Source: Entomortierella parvispora E1425 (lineage: Eukaryota > Fungi > Mortierellomycota). Taken from it: a stretch of DNA of 64,000 nucleotides. Under the pieces are notes generated by a model that saw nothing but the letters and a program-made list of their open reading frames with translations, did no database searches and was not told the DNA's origin. Numbering within the stretch: position 1 is the stretch's first letter; the number at the start of each line of letters is the position of its first letter. The translations under genes and the position numbers were made by a program. The stretch is taken from assembly GCA_020891255.1 (NCBI GenBank), contig BQFW01000006.1, positions 1,426,001 to 1,490,000 of the forward strand, given 5' to 3'. Positions 47,280-63,274 of the stretch are shown piece by piece.

Positions 47280-49208
47280 ATGGAGTCTTCCGGCGAGGCC
47301 TTTGATTCGCTTTGTCGTTCAGTCTTCCTGTCCAACAACAACAATGAGGACTTGCCTTCTGATGAAGAGACGGCTCTGAGTCTCTTGTCCCAGGCCAGGG
47401 TCTATGAGCTTCCTTCGACCTTTGTTCCTCCTGTAGGAGCCCCAGCGGTGGGCAAGGACCGGCGCTGCTATCGGATCCACCTAGACAGTCTCCAAGACCG
47501 TCCCTTGGTACAGCGGGCTGTCCATGGGATCCTGGTCAAGGGCATCAGTCCGGGCGCACTGTGGGAGCTTCCCTTTGATAGGAACCTGACCGGTTACAGC
47601 ACCCAGTCGAGGTCCGAGGTCGTGGAGGCACCTTTGCAGACAAACGTGGTCCTTGATATGGAGGGACTAGAATCATCCACAGAGCATGCAGCCGCCACCA
47701 CTGATGCCTCGGATGATCATTCACAGCAACAACACCAGAAAGTATCAGGGGAAACGATCATGCTGCTGATACCTACGCCCGAGTGGTTGCGCTTGACGGG
47801 CAGGATTCGCTACTGGCGAGCAGAGTCGCACCGCATAAAGTCGGCAGAGCGAGAAGCAAAGTTGGATTCATGGCTGGAAGAGCGCTGGAAAGGCAACCCG
47901 CTTTCCTCGTCCGTTCTTTCGTCACCACCCATGTCCTCTGGATCGCTGCTGGCCTCTGAGATCCCACCAAAGTCCCTGCCATCATCTCCTGTCTCGTCTG
48001 CTTCTTCTTCACCGGCCTCCTCCCCTCGCTCGTCGACGGTGCCGCAAGGAGGACTGGCACCTCTTTCACTGACCAGACCCTCCCTCTACAAACAACCTTT
48101 CCAGGAACAGCAGCTTGAGTCTCTTGTCGACTTTATGGTCCGCTATGGCGATGAACCCTCTGCAGCATCACTACTGAAGGGCCTGTTAGACCTGTGTAGA
48201 CGACAAGTGACAGAAACAACAGTATATGCTTGGACCATCGACAGAGCCAACTTGACGGAACAAAAGCCAGAAGTTTCCGAGGCATTCTTAAACTTGATGG
48301 CCAGACTAGGCTTTGAGTATGTCAACTCTGTGGAGGAACAACAGGCGCATCTCTTGCAATTACAGCAGTTACAACAGCGGGAGCAGGAACAGGAGCCATC
48401 CAGCAATGGCCTACTCTCGTCACCGTCACCGTCCTCGACCTCTGCTGTGCCTCTCCCACCGTTGCAGACATCAACGTCATTTCTATCCGTCGCTTCGGAT
48501 GCAACAGCTGTGGACCCCACCAAGGCTCTCACCAGCAGTGAAGGCAATAGCAGCCATCTCAGCAAACGCTCAACAGAGATAAAGTGGACCCTGGGCTCCA
48601 AGGTGGACGACCGAAGACTCGAATACTGGATTCATAATGTCCAGCAGCCAACTCTTCCTGTGCTCCAGATGGATGGAGGATCGATTTTACCCCTGAATTT
48701 TGCGGCGGCTGGAACTAGCAGTCACAGCGAAGGCGATCTTACTCTTCCAACGATTTCCAGCCCAAAGAAGAAGTCTGCATCGTCCTTGGATTCTGAGGAG
48801 CCATCATTATCACAACACAAGACTCAGCCTCAGAGCGACAAGAAGCCCAATCCTATTCCAGTACAGGTCCGAAAGCGATTCCTGCAAGATAAACACACTA
48901 TACCCGCAGGATCCATTCAGGCTTTGACACAATTCAATGGTACGACAGTGGTGGTTCGAGACCGGGCATTTGTAGCTTTAACAAGTGCATACCGTCTAAG
49001 TGGAGCGGAGCAAGGATCCGGAGGAATGTTTGTAGACAAAGTCAAGAACGATGTCAAATACTTGGCTCGGTGGGCGAGTACCTGTGGAGGACGCTTGGAC
49101 TGGATCTGGACTTGGCTCTTCAGTTCCTTCCAGCGCTCCCGACGATCTGGTAGCAGTGACGGTCAAGATGCCCACAGGCGGCCAAGATTGAACGACGAGA
49201 ACGTGTAA
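47280..49208 (+). CDS. Hypothetical protein, intronless, 642 aa, no domain recognised
   Basis: Long uninterrupted ORF from ATG 47280 (MESSGEAFDSL...) after a pyrimidine-rich leader. Globular-looking blocks alternate with Ser/Pro/Gln-rich linkers. Confidence 0.75.
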   Translation: MESSGEAFDSLCRSVFLSNNNNEDLPSDEETALSLLSQARVYELPSTFVPPVGAPAVGKDRRCYRIHLDSLQDRPLVQRAVHGILVKGISPGALWELPFDRNLTGYSTQSRSEVVEAPLQTNVVLDMEGLESSTEHAAATTDASDDHSQQQHQKVSGETIMLLIPTPEWLRLTGRIRYWRAESHRIKSAEREAKLDSWLEERWKGNPLSSSVLSSPPMSSGSLLASEIPPKSLPSSPVSSASSSPASSPRSSTVPQGGLAPLSLTRPSLYKQPFQEQQLESLVDFMVRYGDEPSAASLLKGLLDLCRRQVTETTVYAWTIDRANLTEQKPEVSEAFLNLMARLGFEYVNSVEEQQAHLLQLQQLQQREQEQEPSSNGLLSSPSPSSTSAVPLPPLQTSTSFLSVASDATAVDPTKALTSSEGNSSHLSKRSTEIKWTLGSKVDDRRLEYWIHNVQQPTLPVLQMDGGSILPLNFAAAGTSSHSEGDLTLPTISSPKKKSASSLDSEEPSLSQHKTQPQSDKKPNPIPVQVRKRFLQDKHTIPAGSIQALTQFNGTTVVVRDRAFVALTSAYRLSGAEQGSGGMFVDKVKNDVKYLARWASTCGGRLDWIWTWLFSSFQRSRRSGSSDGQDAHRRPRLNDENV

Positions 49209-50191: not shown

Positions 50192-50440
50192 TTACTGCGG
50201 CGCGGCTACCATATCGCTGTCACTGTCGTTCCCGCTAAAGTCGCCTTCGTCTTCTTCTTCTTCGTCCTCATCAGGCTGCTCTGGTTCTTCTTCTGTGTAG
50301 CCTTGTCCTTCAGTGATATCATGTTCCAAGAACAAGAACGGGGGGACAGTCTCAGTGTTCTCGGTAAAGGAAGAGGTAGGTGAGCCCGTGGTGGGGGGAG
50401 ATTCGGGGTACTTGCTTGGAATGTTAGCCTTAGTGAGCAT
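50192..50440 (-). CDS. Small acidic protein A (82 aa), member of the candidate micro-protein cluster
   Basis: MLTKANIPSKYPESP...PPFLFLEHD...EEEPEQPDEDEEEEDEGD. ATG start, TATAAAA at 50749-50743, CA-rich leader. Confidence 0.6.
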   Translation of the reverse strand: MLTKANIPSKYPESPPTTGSPTSSFTENTETVPPFLFLEHDITEGQGYTEEEPEQPDEDEEEEDEGDFSGNDSDSDMVAAPQ

Positions 50441-50742
50441 TGCGTTTTTGTGTTGCGTGCAGCGTGTGTGTGTGCTTCTCTGTTTGGATTATTTGATTTT
50501 TTTGTGTCTGAGGTAAGGTCGCTGTATGGCAGGGGGGAAGGAGAGCTGAGGCGTTTGCGCTGCGTCTTTGTGATTGGAGGTGGAAATTGAAGGTTACAAG
50601 GAATGTGAGAGAAAGATGTGGAGATTATCGACGAATTGGGCAAGGTGGATGAGAGGGGGTTTTTTTTCGGGTTGCAGGGAAATGAAAAGAAATTGTGTAG
50701 CATGGAAGGAATTGAGGACGAAAACTGGCCAAAGGTGGATGC

Positions 50743-50749
50743 TTTTATA
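50743..50749 (-). promoter_or_regulatory. Putative TATA box for small ORF A
   Basis: GCTATAAAAG on the minus strand, ~300 nt upstream of ATG 50440. Confidence 0.45.
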
Positions 50750-53165
50750 GCTGCCTCATGAGCAAGACAGACAACGCAGGATGGAGGGGGGGGGGGGGGG
50801 TGACACTCAATTGCGATTGCCTTGCCAATCTCTCAATTGCCAAGAAAGAGAATCGACACGTCAAGGGTGAGTGAAGTTCACGTTGCTTCGCCTTTTTTTT
50901 GCTGTTGATTGAAATGAGACTGGGCCAGAGAATGTGGCACACGGTGGAGGTGGAGCCAAGGACATGGTAGACATGAGAGGAGAGAATGAGAGTCGAGAGA
51001 GCAAAGATAGACAAGACAGACCTTCACAATGACTAATATTAACGACAGCGGAAATGGGAGTCGGCTCATCCAGGGCCCGGGGTAAAAGAAGGTGGAGATG
51101 AAGGTGGGATAGACCAAAGGCCAAGAGTCACCACACATGCATGTGCTGGGTCACTGGTTAAAGAAAAAAAACGGTGGCAAGCCCAACCGCAAAAGGCCAT
51201 CGTTTTCCCCCCTTCACTTCTGCCGCTTCCATTGCTACCAACACTGCTACTTTGCTGATGTGCTGCACAAAGTCATCTCTCTCTCATGATCCAACTGCTG
51301 AGATGACTCTGCCAATTATTTTTTTTAGGTGGTGCGCAATTGCTCTCCGAGGAGGAAGGATGGGGGCGAGGGGAAAGAGAGAAGAGGGTGACTGACTCTC
51401 TGTTTGTGCTTTCAATTGAAAAGGATAAAATTGTTTGTTTTTGTGCTCTGTTTTGTTCCATCTCGCCCTCATTGCACAAGGGGCTAATCTTTTTTGAAAC
51501 GACGCGCGGTTTTTTTTCACAGGCAGGGTGCACAATGGCCACACAAGGAGACTTTTGGAGTCATCAACTCTCAAAACAACAGCCCTCTTTCCATGCGAGC
51601 AAGTGAAGGAGCTACAAAACAGAGTCAGTTCAGTCTGTTCCTTTGACTAAACAAGAAACCTTGAGACACAAAAGAGAAGGTAAAAAAACGCAACGCCTCC
51701 ACTTACCTGGGAAGCATGACGGCCGCAAGAGATTCCATTGGCAAGAAATATGGAAGAAGGAGTGCCCCCTCCCTCCTGATCGGATAATTATACAAGAAAG
51801 GAAGACGTAAAGGGCGAAAGGGTAGAAGAGAGCGAAGGGGAAGTCAGTGTCGGAGTTGAAAGAGTCGACAAATGTGATCTGGAGGGAGGGACCATGGTTG
51901 CACAAAAGCGCCACAAGGTTAATGCAGCAGGGTAACTCTGTTGTTTCTCTGCAGCGTGAGTAGACAGAGTGGTTGAAAAAGAACATGGATCAAATCAACC
52001 AAGGCAACGAATATGGACGCATTGAATAGGATCCCATCCCCATCCCTCCCTTCCCCTTCAACTTTGACTTTGCATTCTCCCTCTATCTCTAACCGTTTTT
52101 GGAAGACATCAAAAAATGGAAGAGATTGAAGATGATCCATTGGGGACCGCAGCTCCAGAGTTATCACTGTTTACTCTCTGTTATCTTGAGGTCTTGTGGA
52201 GCATGACTGGAGTATGACATCGGGACCCCCTTGCTATTGTGACAACAGCAACAACAGCAACATCGACAACACGCAAACTTATCAAAGGTGTTTGTTTGCA
52301 CTGTATCAGGTGCTGTCTGTGTCACAAGTGTCTCCGCCAATGATCAAAGAAGATGTTTGCCACCACCGGCGGTTGTTTCCGACCCTCCAAGGGGCAGTTT
52401 GTTGCATGGCAAAGTGGGAAGCAAAAGACGGGAGATGGAAAGGTGAACCAGGGTGGCATGTAGAAAGCCTTGATGAAAATTAAGAGCAATCAATTTCCGT
52501 GGCGCTCCACACATGCAGGGCTAGATGAGGCACAGAGTGGCGAAGCTGTCCTTGTCGCACGGTTTCTGCTCAATGTTTTTGTTACTTGAGATTTCTCGGG
52601 GTTGTAGTCCAGGGTCCGGATCATTTTCACATTGCTCATGTTGATGCAAAGGAAACAAGTGTCGGAGGAGGAAGGGCCATGGTATTTGCCCTTTCTAAAA
52701 AAAAATACGAGCCCAACGCGAGCCCTCTGTATGAAATACATTCTCTGCAGCGAAAAGGAAAATGGAAAAAAAATCAAGGGTACCTTGAAAAAGCGTCCTC
52801 TCGTATGACCATGGTCGCTGCGGTAAGTCAGGGCATCGCTCATGCAGCTGATAAGCGAGCAACCCCAGCCAACCTCTTTTCAATTACAGAGGGGTGGGTG
52901 GGGAAATTCTGGTCGTTTTTTTTTTTCTTTTTTTTTTGTGGAATTCCTGAGCAGTGGGTTTTGGATGTCAACCAAGCCGAGAATTGTGGTCTCCGATTGG
53001 AGGCATTCGTTTTTCTCTCATTGTTCCTTTCAATGAATCAGGTCGTATCATTTGGTGCTCTTGTACATGTAATGTCTGTGTTTGCCTTCCTTCACCTGCG
53101 GCAGCAAAAGATAGACTCTGCACGACGCTCAGGCATGCTTCACTGCTGACCTGTCTTGGCAGCAG

Positions 53166-53172
53166 TATAAAA
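53166..53172 (+). promoter_or_regulatory. Putative TATA box for small ORF B
   Basis: GTATAAAAC, ~240 nt upstream of ATG 53409, followed by a CA- and pyrimidine-rich leader. Confidence 0.5.
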
Positions 53173-53408
53173 CAGCCTGCTTTCCAAGGTCCTCTTGCTC
53201 CGTAACCTTTTCACTTTCTCCTAAGGCACACAACACACGCACTCACTCGCACATATACACACAAACCCCCAGCCTCCCCCCATCTTCCTTGTATTTATTC
53301 TACTTTTCAGTCGACCTCAAAATATCGGCTGCCCCTTCCCCCTTCCTCTCAATCAGCCAACTACATATCTCTGCTACATCCATATCCCTATCCCTACCCC
53401 TATCCACC

Positions 53409-53603
53409 ATGCACTGCTGCACAGGCGCCTCTCCGTCTCAGATGCCTTCACGCCGGTTCCCCAGTCAGACAGTTTCAAGCGACGATGATAACATTTTCCT
53501 AGAGGAGATCGAGCCTCAACAAGATGAGGTGGAGGAGGAGGAAGAGGAGGAGGAAGACGTCCAAGGCGAAGCAGAGGAAGACCGTACATCTGACAGCGAG
53601 TAA
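53409..53603 (+). CDS. Small acidic protein B (64 aa; 53 aa if the Met at 53442 is used)
   Basis: MHCCTGASPSQMPSRRFPSQTVSSDDDNIFLEEIEPQQDEVEEEEEEEEDVQGEAEEDRTSDSE. Start context CACCATG; upstream TATA box. Confidence 0.62.
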   Translation: MHCCTGASPSQMPSRRFPSQTVSSDDDNIFLEEIEPQQDEVEEEEEEEEDVQGEAEEDRTSDSE

Positions 53604-55580
53604 AAAATCTCAAATGGCGAAGCTCATGGAAAAGGGAGTAGCTCAGCCATTGTGGAACTCAGGACCAGCTCGGCTCGCTCTAAAAAGGTTAAACTGAATC
53701 AGCCTCAGATGTTCGTGCAACCAAAACAGTTGTGCACGAAAAAAAGGGAGGACAGCTCACAAGAGGAGCTTTTCAGCCTCCCATGTAACAATAACAAAGA
53801 TAACAGCAACAACAACAACAACAACAACACCCCTGTACAATGACTGTAGTTATAGAAAAATAAAAAGCACCTGTGAAATCATTTCGGGCCGCAATTGCTG
53901 TTGCAACATGCTTTTTGGCTTCGCCATATCTGTGGCTTCAAAAAGGCGCAGGGAGGCAAAGAGCTGTGCAGGGTGGGTGGTGTTTTCGTCTTATCTCACT
54001 TCAATCTATCGTGCATGACACCCGCCGCCGCGGATAGATAGAGAAGTGAGAAGGTTCCTCCTCTCGTCCATGGAGAGCCAGTAGTAGAGCGGAAGTGGAA
54101 GGCAGTAAAGCTTTGTCCTCGGCAACCCAACACGATACTACTTAGCCATTTGCTATCTTGGATGAAGGAAATAGACCAGGGGATCAGGGGTGAAATAGGA
54201 GAGAGAGTGGAGGCAAGGGGATAGCCTTCCATGGATACTTCCAACAAAGTTGCGAGAGGAAGAGCTCTGTTTTCGCGACGCCGAGAGCACGAATAGCCAC
54301 AGTTGAGGTTGTGGCTCAAAAAAAAAATGCCTCAAATTCGTCCGTTGGATGATCACAGAAGGCATTGAGAACATTCTGTCGACGTTGACAGAACCTACTA
54401 GATCTTCCGGCTCAATGACTTTACGCCCTCAACCTTCTTTTGGCCTTGATCACCCATTCTCTTTACTATTTTCCTTGTAATCTCCTCAATGGCCCTGATT
54501 GACTCTGCCATGCAGTACCCCACAGCCACTTTCGAACATTCGGGCCAACATTAGCGCTCTTTGCCCACCTCTGCTCTAATGATGAGGGCATGCGGGCCCT
54601 TTGTGAAGCTGTGGAACCCCCAAAACAAGCGCCATCTCCCGATCCAACGCGCCCTACTTCCAGGTAACACCAATTCGCCACCCCAGATCAAGCGAGGCAA
54701 AGGGCGGGGGCGGCCAAAGCAAAAAATTCATTAGTTGCACTTGCACACACCTCCGTAGATCAAAGGAGATAGATAATAGATCCCACGCTTGTAGAGGGGA
54801 GGGACGAAGAGCCAGAAGTCTACCCAGATCACTTTCTTGCTCCAACTTTGGTTGAAAATAGAACTAGGCAAAGTGGGATTAGCTTTGCCACGGTGCTTCT
54901 TGCAAAGTCGAAGCAGTACGAGTAAGAAAAATAGGCCAAAGAGTGAAAATAGAGTAAGTCGATGAGGGAGAGAGAGAGAGAGGGTGGGCGGGAGAGGAGG
55001 GGGGTCATCTGTCATTAGAATCAACGGGAAAGCTGGTCAATGATCTATCCTCGCGTACGATACCGTTTTTTCTCCCTCCTTTGCCATTTTTGGTCTTGAT
55101 CAAGCGCGCTCTGTTGCTGGAGATGTGAGGAACATTGGGTCGTTGTTATTCAACTAGCACATCCTTCCCACCCCACCCCCACACCATATTTTTATCCGTC
55201 AGTCGATCTGCAGCCTCGGAATTTAAAATATATCCTTCGGTGCAAGGCAAAGCTGTAAACATTCCAACGGCCTGACATCCTCTTATCCTTTCCCGCCACT
55301 TTTTTGTATGAGGAAAGTGGAAGAACAGAAGGCCGGCATATTTAATCGGTGAAGGCATTTTCTTGCTCAATCGACTCGTCGTCATAGAAGCACCCACTAT
55401 TTTCTCCCGCACATTTTGGTCGTGAACAATGTTCATCGACGTTATCACCCACTCAGATCACGATCGCGTTTGGGCTGTATAACTTTGCCGAAGACTTGGC
55501 AAGCTCCAAGCAAATTGTCGAAGTGAAGTTGATATAGTCCACAAGACTGACCCGAAGGACATCGGGAGCAAAAGAGATGG

Positions 55581-55588
55581 TATAAAAA
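55581..55588 (+). promoter_or_regulatory. Putative TATA box for small ORF C
   Basis: GGTATAAAAAC, 133 nt upstream of ATG 55714. Confidence 0.5.
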
Positions 55589-55713
55589 CTTAGGGCTTCT
55601 GTCTCTTTCTCCCTCCAACCCATCGACCTCAGCAATCATCTTCTTACTCATCTTCATCTCCATCTTCATCCTCATACTCTTCCAAGCATTCCCACCCCTG
55701 TTCACCAACAAAC

Positions 55714-55980
55714 ATGAGCTATCGCAGTCAACCTTCTCGGAACTTCCCTTCTGCTACAGATTCTGATCATGGAAAGTATGTTGAGCTCAATCAAGAAGAT
55801 ACTTCCGAACAGTCCGAAAATCACGGTCAAGGTGGTCAGGGCGGCGGCCAAGCAGGTCAGGGAGGTCAAGGAGGTCAGGGAGGTCAAGGCGGCCAAGGTG
55901 GTCAAGGCGGCCAAGGTGGTCACGGTGGTCAAGGCGGTCAAGGTGGTCAAGGCGGCCAGGGCGGCCAGGGCGGAAACTAA
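55714..55980 (+). CDS. Small protein C (88 aa) with a (GQG)n glycine/glutamine tail
   Basis: MSYRSQPSRNFPSATDSDHGKYVELNQEDTSEQSENH followed by about 16 GQG-type units. Start context CAAACATG. Repeat codons vary mainly at third positions. Confidence 0.72.
   Translation: MSYRSQPSRNFPSATDSDHGKYVELNQEDTSEQSENHGQGGQGGGQAGQGGQGGQGGQGGQGGQGGQGGHGGQGGQGGQGGQGGQGGN
55825..55974 (+). repeat. Degenerate 9-bp coding tandem repeat (ggN caR ggN)n
   Basis: Units such as ggtcaaggt, ggtcaggga and ggccaaggt are read directly from the sequence. Confidence 0.9.
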
Positions 55981-57339
55981 GACGACCAAGTGCATGGTCT
56001 CCCTCTTTCCGTCTCGAGTCTTGTCACACAAGATTTAAGGTGCTACGAATGGCTCCTCGATAGCTTGGAAAGAGATCATCAACTACTCGCAAGGGCCCTC
56101 TTCAAGAACAACGTGAACAAACAGAGGGACGCACAGCAACTGCGTTGGCACCATCGTTCTAGTCTTTCGTTTTCCACATCCATCGTATATAGTTTGTTCA
56201 TTAAAGGAATCAAAAACAAACAATTTCCTACGGCGAAGTAGAGGCAAAGTAGCGGATACAACTGCCAATCAAAAGGGGGAAATAATTTCAAAAGGAGATA
56301 CCAAAAGGGAAAGGAGATCTGTGGAAGAAAAAGTGAGAGTCAAAGACGTTTCTATCTAGGATACGTCCAACGACTTGCGAAGGGGGTGGCATGCCCCAGG
56401 AGTGTAATGGTATCTTTGCCCAGTCCCCAGAGGCACATCTTTGGCAAAGCGAGGCCAAAAGTAGATTATTCGAGGGACCAATTGACGTCGATGAGGGGGT
56501 ACCTGAACGGAAATGGACGTGGATGCAAGTAGGAAAAGTGAAAAGGTAGAAAGGACAGCATCTTTCTTTTTTGGCAGTCGACTGTCTCGAGGCGGATTTT
56601 TTTTTGTTTTTTGAGAGCACCTTCCCTTTTGACCAGCTGCATTGTGGTTTTGCAAGGACACAGAGGGCACCCGCAGGGCTCGGCCAATTAGGTCAGGAAA
56701 GACGGTCTACTCTCTCTCTCTCTCTTTCTCTTTTGGTCAAGTGCACGGGAAGGGTGACGGATGGAAAGTGAGGATTGTTCTAACGACTGTGGCTGAAAAA
56801 ATTGGAGTTGCGGCCTTCTTTGACTGCACCTAGACGCAACGGCCAGGTTCTCATCCTGGAATAGTTTGCCTCCAAATCAAGGGTCGACGGTTGAGCGATT
56901 ACATTTCACACCATCACCTATGCCATCCATAGAGAATAGTCCTTGTTCGTCATTTCATCCTGTCATCTGGCAGCGGCTAAGGAAGGAGACCTGTTGAGGT
57001 GCCATAGCTCCTCAGGTGAAGAAAAAAACTGTTTTTCGTCAAACCCGTGGGACATAACTGGGGAGTGGATCCTGCCTTTTCCTCGTCTCTACGCCTGCTA
57101 GTCGTAGGAAGTGCTCAAGGGAAAGACGGAAGAGAAAAAAAAAGAAGAATGGGAAAAAGAAGAATGAGGGAATTGCTTAAGCACGCACAGACAAAAAAAA
57201 AAAAGCACAGCCACTCACATACCCTTCTCTTTTCCAATTCTATAGAGAACGAGAAAAAGAACTCCATTCTCTCTACTCTTGCGATGCTCTAGGTCACTGA
57301 GCAGATGCAAGGCGGAGTAGCCCGTTGCTCGCTGTACAA

Positions 57340-57347
57340 TATAAAAA
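57340..57347 (+). promoter_or_regulatory. Putative TATA box for small ORF D
   Basis: AATATAAAAAC, 72 nt upstream of ATG 57412. Confidence 0.5.
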
Positions 57348-57411
57348 CCTTCTGTCAAGTACTACCTTTTTCTTCAAAATATCAACTCTTCTTCCTACGC
57401 CAATAATCTCC

Positions 57412-57588
57412 ATGCCATCTCAACAGCAACCAAGCCGCAAACTCCGTGTTGCGACCAACGCCACCGATGACGAGTCCTTATTCATGGTCGATACAGTCGA
57501 GGAGACCACCCCTCCATCCGCTGGTGCCCCTCCCCCACCAAACAACGATCAAGCTGCCCTGGACAACGATGTGCATGGCCCCCATTAA
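57412..57588 (+). CDS. Small acidic/Pro-rich protein D (58 aa)
   Basis: MPSQQQPSRKLRVATNATDDESLFMVDTVEETTPPSAGAPPPPNNDQAALDNDVHGPH. TATA box upstream; CA-rich 3' flank. Confidence 0.6.
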   Translation: MPSQQQPSRKLRVATNATDDESLFMVDTVEETTPPSAGAPPPPNNDQAALDNDVHGPH

Positions 57589-58981
57589 GCTTCTACTCTC
57601 TCGTGCAACAAGAAATCAATGGCCCCGCCTCCTCCCAAACGCAAGCAGCCCACAGACACACAGGCACACACAGACACAGACACACACAGACAGAGCGCTC
57701 AATCGCACATTTTCACCAATTGTAACCACACACCACCGCCACAGGACATACAGTGAGGCATAGCTCCTCCTTAAATATGTCCGCTTCGCCTCTACATCAT
57801 AGAGTGCCTTGACCCTTCACCTCGGGCACACCATCTAACACGACAGCTATCCTTCTCCTCTGCGACATACACAAAAAATAAACCCCTTCCCCAAAAAAAA
57901 TTAAAAAAAATCTCCGAGTGGGTAGAATGATGATCCACGGTTTCCTTGGCTAGTTTATCCGGGCTTGCACCCTTCCCACCATCCCTACTGTCATTCCTCT
58001 CTTCCCGTGAGCCTGAGACCATGAATAGGATGTTTAGTTATTTTCGTTGTGCCTCTCCCTCCCTTTTTTCATCTTCCAACTGTGCAGGAGAGAACGTTGA
58101 AAGAGGGAACGCGGGAGAGGATGTTCATGCTGTCCATTCTTTCAAAAGATTTTTGAATGGCGAACCGAAAAAAAACCAGCTCAATTGAATCAAGTCGGAC
58201 ACTTTAATTGCACGGACCACATGCAGAGAAGAGCCAAGAGGATACCTTCATAGAGTACATACACCAAAACAACAGTATCAGTATTCCTGATCTGGTCTTT
58301 GCGCTCTTCATGTAGTCATAGGCTGTGACAAAGGCTTTCTTTGCTCAGTTCGCACGCAGGGAGTAGGCGGCCAAGCAGGTGTAGTCACTTGGACTGAGAG
58401 ACAAAGAGGAGGTAGGTTGGCAACTTGGTGATGATCTGTCTGGGGCAGGTAGCAGGCAAGAGAACGAAAGAGGGCAGGGCTTGAGAGCGCAAGTTTTATT
58501 TGATACCAGACAAACTAAGGAAAAAAGTTGGCTTCACCTTCAACTCCCTGATCTTCACCCTGCAAACCAATGGGCACACTCGTCATAACTCTCCCTCTGC
58601 GCCCTTGGTCCTCTAGGGCTGCGTACGAACAGTCAATTGCTCACATTGATGAGCTACTGGCCTGAAATTGATCCTCGTCGCCTCTAGGGCATTGTCTCTA
58701 TGTGTGCATGATGGGTTGGGGATGAAGTCGCATGTGTTGTCTGCCAAGGTGTGATTGGGATCGTCCCTGCCGCCTATGAAACCTGGGTGTGAGACAACGG
58801 ACTCGAGCAGACGAAGTACTCGCTCGTTAAAGGCCCGAGATCTTGAGAGCCAGATCGATTTTGGTTCGAGATCGAGATCCTTGGACAGAGACAGGTGGCA
58901 CGAAAATGAACCGTGGGACAATTGAACGGGGGAGGGAAAACAAATCCCTCCATTGCAAAGTTTGGTGACACCTTGATCCCT

Positions 58982-59308
58982 TTAAGAATCTTCGGTACCA
59001 CTGACACTTTCGACTTGATTGTCATCCTCGGTCCCAATGGATTCTTTGACTTTGTAAACACCCTGGGCCTCGGGCTCTTCGTCCGAGGGAGCACCGTCTT
59101 GATCAATGCTGTCGGGGGCCAGCACGATAGGGGGTGGGGAATGCACCAATGGATGAAAATGCAACAGGTACATCGGCAAGGGAAGGTTGTGCGGAAGTGG
59201 GTGCGCCATGGGCTGGGGATCAAGCCCGGGATCATCGTCGATAATGGAGAGGAACTCGGGGTAGTCTGACTGAGGAGTTTGAATGCGAGAGGAGAATCTT
59301 CGGCTCAT
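58982..59308 (-). CDS. Small acidic/Pro-His-rich protein E (108 aa)
   Basis: MSRRFSSRIQTPQSDYPEFLSIIDDDPG...SDEEPEAQG...TEDDNQVESVSGTEDS. TATAAAAA at 59429-59422; (CAACG/CA)-rich leader. Confidence 0.58.
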   Translation of the reverse strand: MSRRFSSRIQTPQSDYPEFLSIIDDDPGLDPQPMAHPLPHNLPLPMYLLHFHPLVHSPPPIVLAPDSIDQDGAPSDEEPEAQGVYKVKESIGTEDDNQVESVSGTEDS

Positions 59309-59421
59309 TTGAGGATGCGGTTGCTGTGTTGTGCGTTGTGCGTTGTGCGTGTGTGTGGGATCGTGGGTGGTAGGGGTCTGGTGAAAAAAAAGGAAAGAGG
59401 GAAAGAAAAAAAAGGTCAACA

Positions 59422-59429
59422 TTTTTATA
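59422..59429 (-). promoter_or_regulatory. Putative TATA box for small ORF E
   Basis: AGTATAAAAATG on the minus strand, ~115 nt upstream of ATG 59308. Confidence 0.5.
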
Positions 59430-60622: not shown

Positions 60623-61092
60623 CGATTCCGTTCATCAGGAGCACGGCCGACATTGCTGCCTTCAAAAATTTGTGCGGAAATGAAGAATGATGATCGATTT
60701 ACTTCTTTTGACTAACCTGCCTCTCTTTCATTGGTCCCTCCTTTCATCGCCCGTGATGCAAGTTCTCTTTGTCTCCTGTTCCCCCTGATCCCCGCAGGAG
60801 GTCATTTTAGAAAGGAACGTGGAAGGGGTCTGTCCGTTCCCGCTCTTCATTTAACATCCGAGACTAGAGGAGCGGGTAAAAAAAAAAATAACGAAGGCAA
60901 CTGTCGAGCATGTGACGTCATGGCGTTCGGGCCACTCGGAGAATAGAGCTATACCTTTGCGAGGTACCTGAACCAAAGCCCACGTTTTTTGAAGGATTAA
61001 TTAAATTCTTCGTCGTCTTTCTTGTGAAAGGGAAGTCTTTTCAATAAGGCAAGTATTGTTTCTTCAATTTCGAAAGTCAATTGCCACTAGCG
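60623..61092 (+). repeat. Diverged direct repeat, copy 1 (partner at 62805-63274)
   Basis: The 103-nt core at 60777-60879 differs at 5 positions from 62959-63061. The exact 15-mer caattgccactagcg recurs at 61078 and 63260. Both offsets are 2182 bp. Confidence 0.9.
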
Positions 61093-62804: not shown

Positions 62805-63274
62805 CGATTCTTCGTCAGGAATTCGTCGACATTGATGGCCTCAAAGATTCTTGTGTGCAAATGAGGAGTGACGATCGACTTTAATTCTTTTGACTAACCT
62901 GCCCCTCTGACATTCTTCCTTCCGTTCATCCCCCCGGTGCAACATTCTCGTTGTCTCATGTTCCCCCTGATCCCCGCAGGAGGACATTTTAGGAAAGAAC
63001 GTGGAAGGGGTCTGTCCGTTCCCGCCGTTCATTTAACATCCGAGACTAGAGGAGCGGGTAAGAAAAATAACTCAATTGAAGACAACTTTCGAGCGTGTGA
63101 CGCCACCGCGTTCGGGCCATGCGGAGGATAGAGCTATACCTTCATGAGGTACCTGAACCAACCGCCACACGTTCCTGAGTTACTGATCAGTCATTGTGTC
63201 CACTCTATCATCTTCGTAGTGAAAGCCCAGGCTTTCGGTCAGACAGCAATAATAGAATGCAATTGCCACTAGCG
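62805..63274 (+). repeat. Diverged direct repeat, copy 2
   Basis: Same alignment as copy 1; homology decays toward the flanks. Confidence 0.9.

Follow-up and report, generated by a model that had tools for sequence, protein, structure and literature searches.

Several tiny unstructured proteins are known whose function resides in a few short motifs, among them PKI, PP1 inhibitor-2/Ypi1 and the trio Sml1, Hug1 and Dif1, which are modular paralogues with common motifs; the microProtein concept belongs to the same kind. Here we describe a family of genes for small proteins in the soil fungus Entomortierella parvispora E1425, first seen as five open reading frames (ORFs), A to E, near the end of a stretch of 64,000 nucleotides (the window) of contig BQFW01000006.1, assembly GCA_020891255.1, where the GenBank record coordinate equals the window coordinate + 1,426,000. 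The family consists of lineage-restricted, tandemly dispersed genes for small acidic disordered proteins. It is undescribed as a defined family, while its general kind, lineage-specific small disordered proteins, is familiar; it is fast-evolving. The best explanation for the whole, which we hold with slightly better than even confidence, is that of lineage-restricted modular disordered microproteins with an N-terminal docking module. In contrast to the linear-motif regulators named above, none of their defining motifs (the PKA pseudosubstrate RRxS/A, RVxF and the others tested) fits the family as a whole, and, unlike in the microProtein concept, the members show no homology to any larger parent.

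Other described systems resemble the locus in part. Prothymosin-alpha-like proteins are comparable to members A, B and G69 in length (about 50-110 amino acids, aa), in an Asp+Glu content of up to 45%, in lacking Cys and in having a conserved N-terminal segment before an acidic run, but there is no sequence similarity, most tails here are Pro/His- or Gly/Gln-rich, and the present genes form a fungal lineage-restricted tandem family. The hydrophilins and the yeast Sip18/Stf2/Hsp12 class are likewise small, hydrophilic and disordered with TATA-type promoters; they have no sequence relation to the family, however, whose conserved feature is a bipartite N-terminal motif. The MSDIN-type precursors of ribosomally synthesised and post-translationally modified peptides (RiPPs), which give rise to amatoxin/phallotoxin, are also encoded by multi-copy tiny genes with a conserved N-terminus followed by hypervariable sequence. 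In contrast to these, the proteins studied here are longer (58-160 aa), they lack a conserved follower as well as a short Pro-bracketed core, and their variable part is acidic and disordered.

Delineation of the family

The five ORFs of 82, 64, 88, 58 and 108 aa, on strands -, +, +, + and - in that order, were all recovered where an earlier note, made from the sequence alone, had placed them. Member A (50192-50440, minus strand) has an isoelectric point (pI) of 4.05 and is on record in GCA_020891255.1 as a hypothetical protein with exactly this product; member E (58982-59308, minus strand) is also annotated as a hypothetical protein. Members B (53409-53603), C (55714-55980) and D (57412-57588), all on the plus strand, are without annotation. 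A two-block position matrix was built from the alignment in the earlier note and used to score every M-start ORF. For an independent test, a matrix made from the five peptides only was applied to 923 ORFs outside the window, and its top four hits scored 23.5, 20.9, 18.8 and 14.9, against 11.8 for the next best ORF and a maximum of 10.9 over 20 shuffles. All four are small acidic ORFs, located in the cluster or in its syntenic counterpart by a conserved 642-aa gene.

These four hits, in order of score, are G160, H, F and G69. Members F and H lie just past the window end and are annotated as hypothetical proteins: F (133 aa, GJJ72140.1) occupies L002:4893-5294(+), window-equivalent 64015-64416 on the minus strand, and H (74 aa, GJJ72141.1) occupies L002:2692-2916(-), window-equivalent 66393-66617 on the plus strand. 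The other two are from Gryganskiella cystojenkinii, where G160 (160 aa, L003:2922-3404, minus strand) is annotated as KAG0042852.1 and G69 (69 aa, L003:5857-6066, minus strand) is without annotation. Entomortierella parvispora thus has at least seven members (A-E, F and H) in about 16.5 kb, and the syntenic stretch of G. cystojenkinii contains at least two. A scan beyond H to window-equivalent 76.6 kb found no further member.

When each peptide was left out of the matrix in turn, using the original five plus G160 (n=1340 ORFs), B, C and G160 each came out 1st, while E took rank 2, D rank 6 and A rank 116; with all nine members (n=1791 ORFs) every one ranked 1st except D, which ranked 2nd. A recovers its rank only with H and G69, its relatives of the K[FY]PES type, in the matrix. 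Pairwise Smith-Waterman z scores were 14.1 for E-F, 7.9 for H-G69 and 7.8 for B-C, and E and F are 47% identical over 68 ungapped residues. At the C-terminus of D, NDVHGPH resembles NDAHPHH of G160. No repeats linking the members were found at the DNA level, and we therefore regard them as old duplicates rather than products of recent segmental duplication. The description of the ORFs as old paralogs that keep two short motifs is borne out by the paralogy of E and F, by the independent members found with the motif, and by the signs of purifying selection described below.

An alternative is that these are chance ORFs in non-coding DNA, no more alike than random small ORFs of the region, an outcome that the earlier note had itself named as fatal to its proposal. 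The proteins are indeed short and of low complexity, and they have no database homologues. The matrix scores, the shuffles and the leave-one-out ranks contradict it nevertheless, as do the independent prediction of four further members, the turnover of synonymous sites beside conserved residues, the TATA statistics, the codon usage and the transcript over E (all below), and we consider this explanation effectively excluded.

Further candidates were tried and rejected. The ORFs at L003:8396-8656(+), L003:7695-7919(+) and window 56391-56549(+) remained below a convincing level (z at most 3.3), and an origin of the family from the N-terminus of the neighbouring MgtE-like transporter (MSKLF...DDDDP) was not significant (z at most 2.1).

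Protein features

The nine members are 58-160 aa long with a pI of 4.0-5.0 and an Asp+Glu content of 8-45%, and they contain no Cys; their basic residues cluster at the N-terminal motif. The longest hydrophobic run in any member is at most 6 residues, from which it follows that there is neither a signal peptide nor a membrane segment, in agreement with the earlier statement that signal peptides are absent. AlphaFold2 run with the family alignment gave no secondary structure and a predicted template modelling score (pTM) of 0.16. For F, the model in the ESM Atlas has a predicted local distance difference test score (pLDDT) of 0.53 and a pTM of 0.10, and no structural look-alike of this model was found above 0.6.

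What the members conserve is a module of about 30 residues at the N-terminus. Its first motif, of basic-aromatic-proline type, can be written [RK][RKN]?[FY]P[SEG][ST] and occurs for example as RRFPS, RNFPS, RKYPS, QKFPES, SKYPES and EKFPGS. The second follows after 8-25 Ser/Thr/Asp-rich residues and is hydrophobic, then acidic, of the S-L-F-L-V-P-x-D-D type, with the instances IFLEEIE, SLFMVD, EFLSIIDDD, EFLVPYDD, SLFLVPLD, SLFLVPEND and SLFLTVIED. A third, His-containing and hydrophobic motif is common to E, F, H, G69 and A. The tails are unrelated and comprise poly-Glu/Asp, a GGQ repeat and Pro/His-rich sequence.

In A, an N-terminal KYPES motif is followed by the His-containing FLFLEHD and a poly-acidic tail. 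B has PSRRFPS at residues 13-19, then IFLEE and a poly-Glu tail; C has PSRNFPS, a weak second motif and a (GGQ)n tail encoded by a 9-nt tandem repeat; D has PSRKL, SLFMVD and a Pro-rich tail; and E has MSRRFSS, PEFLSIIDDD, a Pro/His-rich middle and an acidic end. The N-terminal alignment first proposed for the five peptides holds with regard to the shared motif, but the motif of B does not stand at its very N-terminus, as it begins at residue 12-13, after MHCCTGASPSQ. The assignment of FLFLEHD in A to the second motif needs to be changed, this stretch being likelier an instance of the third.

Coding signal and selection

We calculated a codon-usage log-likelihood ratio (LLR) trained on the long ORFs of the window. 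Per codon, it was 0.23-0.59 for the members (0.42 for A, 0.23 and 0.30 for C and D) and -0.05 to 0.35 for the long ORFs, against 0.015 +/- 0.086, with a maximum of 0.26, for 54 other small ORFs in the region. Between E and F the non-synonymous divergence (dN) is 0.40 and the synonymous divergence (dS) 1.30 (dN/dS ~0.3), and different codons are used at 12 of their 32 identical residues. H and G69 are saturated at synonymous sites, and of their 15 identical residues 11 are encoded by different codons; one motif Ser is encoded by AGT in B and by TCT in C.

A second isolate under the same species label (X3) provided contigs collinear with the B-to-E stretch, in which several segments are replaced or skipped. 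Relative to window positions 53330-59329 it carries 346 substitutions and 83 indels, with replaced segments such as 56621-57244, and its identity over B to E, as estimated from the listed differences, is roughly 85-90%. The X3 isolate may be a distinct lineage. Within B, the 12 listed substitutions divide into 6 synonymous and 6 non-synonymous ones; the motif cores are unchanged, and the synonymous changes (at S14, R15, S19, D27, L31 and E33) all fall in or beside motif residues.

Selection can be seen in the N-terminal module but not in the tails, and these codon comparisons indicate that the module is under protein-level constraint. Given the synonymous turnover, the gene-like codon usage and the transcripts, which were seen over E and B only, A to E are real protein-coding genes.

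Promoters and leaders

Each of the five ORFs A to E has one correctly oriented TATAAAA upstream of its ATG. These boxes lie at 50743-50749 on the minus strand for A (309 nt upstream), 53166-53172 on the plus strand for B (243 nt upstream of the first ATG), 55581-55587 on the plus strand for C (133 nt), 57340-57346 on the plus strand for D (72 nt) and 59423-59429 on the minus strand for E (121 nt). The distance range of 70-300 nt given previously is therefore 72-309 nt as measured here. F has TATAAAA at -112 and H has TATATAA at -76. With only 15 copies of TATAAAA in the window, counting both strands, ~0.036 are expected per 310-nt upstream stretch, so that finding one upstream of 5/5 ORFs is improbable by chance (~6e-8 by our own arithmetic).

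The leaders from TATA box to ATG contain 5-13% G in all five genes. They are free of ATG, the leader of B included; the exceptions are A and E, each with a single ATG no more than 46 nt from the TATA box, and these two stray ATGs probably lie upstream of the transcription start. Every E. parvispora member (A-F and H) thus possesses its own TATA box and a G-poor, ATG-free or nearly ATG-free leader. Such an arrangement of one TATA box per gene agrees with the proposal of the earlier note that the paralogs are separately regulated.

Transcription and annotation

The E1425 genes were predicted by AUGUSTUS using transcripts of one mycelium RNA-seq library (PMC8759367). This RNA-hinted annotation contains A, E, F and H, all recorded in GenBank as hypothetical proteins (with EMPS locus tags for A and E), and leaves B, C and D uncalled. 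The expectation that gene callers miss ORFs this small was accordingly right for B, C and D and wrong for A and E, whose annotation means that not all five were missed.

Transcription was assessed with a run from the assembly's own sample (X2; its contigs total 24 Mb, and one loose end carries a TruSeq adapter), whose contigs were compared with the 6-kb stretch 53330-59329; A lies outside it. The run label had been guessed as 'DNA?', but the depth is patchy, from 0 to 91, whereas that of the DNA run is flat at 72.5, and from this together with the genome paper (PMC8759367) we infer that X2 is an RNA-seq library. An unspliced contig of 879 nt at depth 91 covers E (58478-59356, minus strand) and consists of a 5' leader of ~48 nt, the ORF and ~500 nt of 3' untranslated region, its 5' end lying ~70 nt downstream of the TATA box. 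A contig at ~53267-53610 with a depth of 4.4 spans the whole ORF of B. For D, there was only an 87-nt fragment at the 3' end (57564-57650, depth 4), and no X2 contig lies on the ORF of C. No introns were seen: the members with RNA contigs (E and B) are unspliced and the annotated members are single-exon.

These data raise the alternative of a partly dead family, in which E and perhaps A, F, H and B are functional and C and D are silent or decaying duplicates. The X2 coverage of C and D is as such a state would give, the RNA-hinted annotation omits B, C and D, and C has the weakest second motif together with a repeat-made tail. On the other hand, the ORFs of C and D are intact and gene-like in codon usage, each still with a TATA box and an ATG-free leader, and silence is not demonstrable from one growth condition. 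We regard this alternative as doubtful while according it appreciable weight.

X2 has a further contig of 219 nt (56486-56704, depth 6.4) between C and D, in a part free of family ORFs. It is overlapped by a 52-aa ORF at 56391-56549(+), the candidate rejected above, which contains a faint motif-2-like SRLFEGPIDVDE; this may represent a copy in decay or a transcript that is non-coding.

Homologue searches and synteny

None of the nine members matched a Pfam family at E <= 1, and a phmmer-type search with E returned only E itself. A profile of six members found its training members only, both in a word-index search of 5.8 billion proteins and in an exhaustive one of 1.84 billion representatives, so that the breadth of the family rests on two genomes. 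No relative was confirmed in JGI metagenomes scanned with the E/F and H/G69 alignments, and no literature was found on such a family in Mortierella.

In Gryganskiella, G160 and G69 lie within a gene-poor stretch of ~9 kb immediately downstream of the gene whose product is the orthologue, at 67% identity, of the 642-aa protein encoded beside the cluster in E. parvispora. In the 20-kb loci around the 642-aa orthologue of E. chlamydospora and Gamsiella no member was found (best score <=11.8), and there a TIP49 gene adjoins the orthologue. A further ENA contig (L007) breaks off within the 642-aa gene and offers no sequence beyond it.

Functional interpretation

Linear-motif consensuses were matched at the conserved sites of the nine members. 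The suggestion that the first motif is a PKA/AGC-kinase-type site does not extend to the family, as RRxS/T is present in 1/9 and RxxS/T in 4/9, with G160 having no Ser/Thr at the site. The 14-3-3 mode II consensus (R-x-[FY]-x-pS-x-P) is found in F only, or in 4/9 if the +2 Pro is waived; Pro at position -1 is disfavoured. The likening of the second motif to TOR signalling (TOS) or Atg8-interacting/LC3-interacting region (AIM/LIR) docking motifs also fails as a family feature, TOS (F-[EDQS]-hydrophobic-[ED]-hydrophobic) occurring in none of the nine and the LIR core (acidic, then [WFY]xx[LIV]) in two. RVxF, calcineurin LxVP, the clathrin box and FFAT (two phenylalanines in an acidic tract) were each matched by 0/9, calcineurin PxIxIT by 1/9 and B56 LxxIxE by 2/9. 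A SUMO-interaction-like pattern (three or four hydrophobic residues, [VIL][VILF]x[VIL] or its reverse, then acidic ones), which is a loose one, is present at motif 2 in 5/9.

Under the explanation that we favour, the N-terminal module would be a bipartite short-linear-motif docking peptide for one shared cellular partner, and the variable tails together with the separate TATA promoters would yield condition-specific outputs. A bolder form, which we think improbable, sees in [RK][FY]P ... LFLVPxDD a new motif for docking on a conserved cellular machine, with the family acting as separately inducible decoys or adaptors that tune it.

Polyanion function, protective or buffering, is a further alternative, in which hydrophilin-like (induced by stress or in development), metal/cation-binding or histone/basic-protein-binding tails do the work and the N-terminal module only controls stability or localisation. 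The acidity of the proteins, the poly-Glu/Asp runs in A, B and G69 and the His-containing motifs in E, F, H, G69 and A are compatible with this, and so are the TATA promoters, which in yeast are typical of inducible genes. The tails, however, are unconserved and not all polyacidic, being a GGQ repeat in C and Pro/His-rich in D, E, F, H and G160, and it is the module and not the tails on which selection is seen. Hydrophilins as defined by Garay-Arroyo et al. (2000) reportedly contain Gly >=6% and have a mean hydrophilicity >1 (a grand average of hydropathy, GRAVY, below -1). Only A and C do so, which speaks against the hydrophilin idea of the earlier note: B and G69 are hydrophilic but have 1-2% Gly, and D, E, F, H and G160 have a GRAVY above -1. 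We rate polyanion function as rather unlikely.

RiPP-like precursors were another suggestion, with the N-terminus as the leader for a tailoring enzyme and the variable stretch as the core peptide. A conserved N-terminus with a hypervariable segment in multi-copy small genes does resemble the layout of the MSDIN-type precursors. Yet among the called genes and Pfam hits in and around the cluster there is no tailoring enzyme, be it a prolyl oligopeptidase or other peptidase, a methyltransferase or a DUF3328/UstYa-type protein; the members lack a signal peptide, Kex2 KR sites and Cys; and the variable stretches are long, hydrophilic and acidic. Such a role is very improbable.

Several points weigh against the docking-module explanation itself. 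The family is documented in two genomes only, and the membership of A hangs on the relatives H and G69. No run listed for the 6-kb stretch is recorded as RNA, and all of the RNA contig evidence comes from X2, whose RNA nature is our own reading of its depth and source, and with C lacking a transcript and D represented by a fragment, some copies may be silent or decaying. For X3, the differences listed comprise the substitutions in B and a minority of those elsewhere, so that some ORFs may be broken in that isolate. None of the linear-motif consensuses fits the family, the SUMO-interaction-like one coming closest, and the docking mechanism is something we infer.

If modular microproteins with a docking module are the right explanation, a single defined family, marked by a 30-residue module open to testing, would unite the unannotated B, C and D with four 'hypothetical proteins'. 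The locus would then be a clean natural example of how tiny disordered proteins evolve, with the docking motif kept, the tails replaced and a promoter for each copy, and it would open a way to a new interaction between a peptide and a protein in the early-diverging fungi, a group little studied at this level. Were the bolder form true, a regulatory layer would have arisen in a single lineage of the Mortierellaceae and grown there by tandem duplication. Should the module have no partner, the family would be an ordinary case of lineage-specific orphan genes.

Neighbouring genes

The cluster is bordered on one side by genes for a trehalase, an MgtE-like protein, CTU2 and the 642-aa unknown protein, and on the other by genes for a 461-aa unknown protein, an ArsB/CitMHS-type transporter, a 1114-aa unknown protein and a protein kinase. 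The 642-aa gene (47280-49208(+)) is single-exon, its product has no Pfam domain, and it has orthologues throughout the Mortierellaceae. Its best orthologue is that of G. cystojenkinii (67%, versus 45% for that of Entomortierella chlamydospora), which is odd for an Entomortierella species. The kinase gene encodes 733 aa and follows the 1114-aa gene from window-equivalent 77527 onward (L009:1-1136). Between E and F there is a direct repeat of ~290 nt (60698-60983 and 62880-63168), whose two copies are 79-86% identical and 2182 nt apart.

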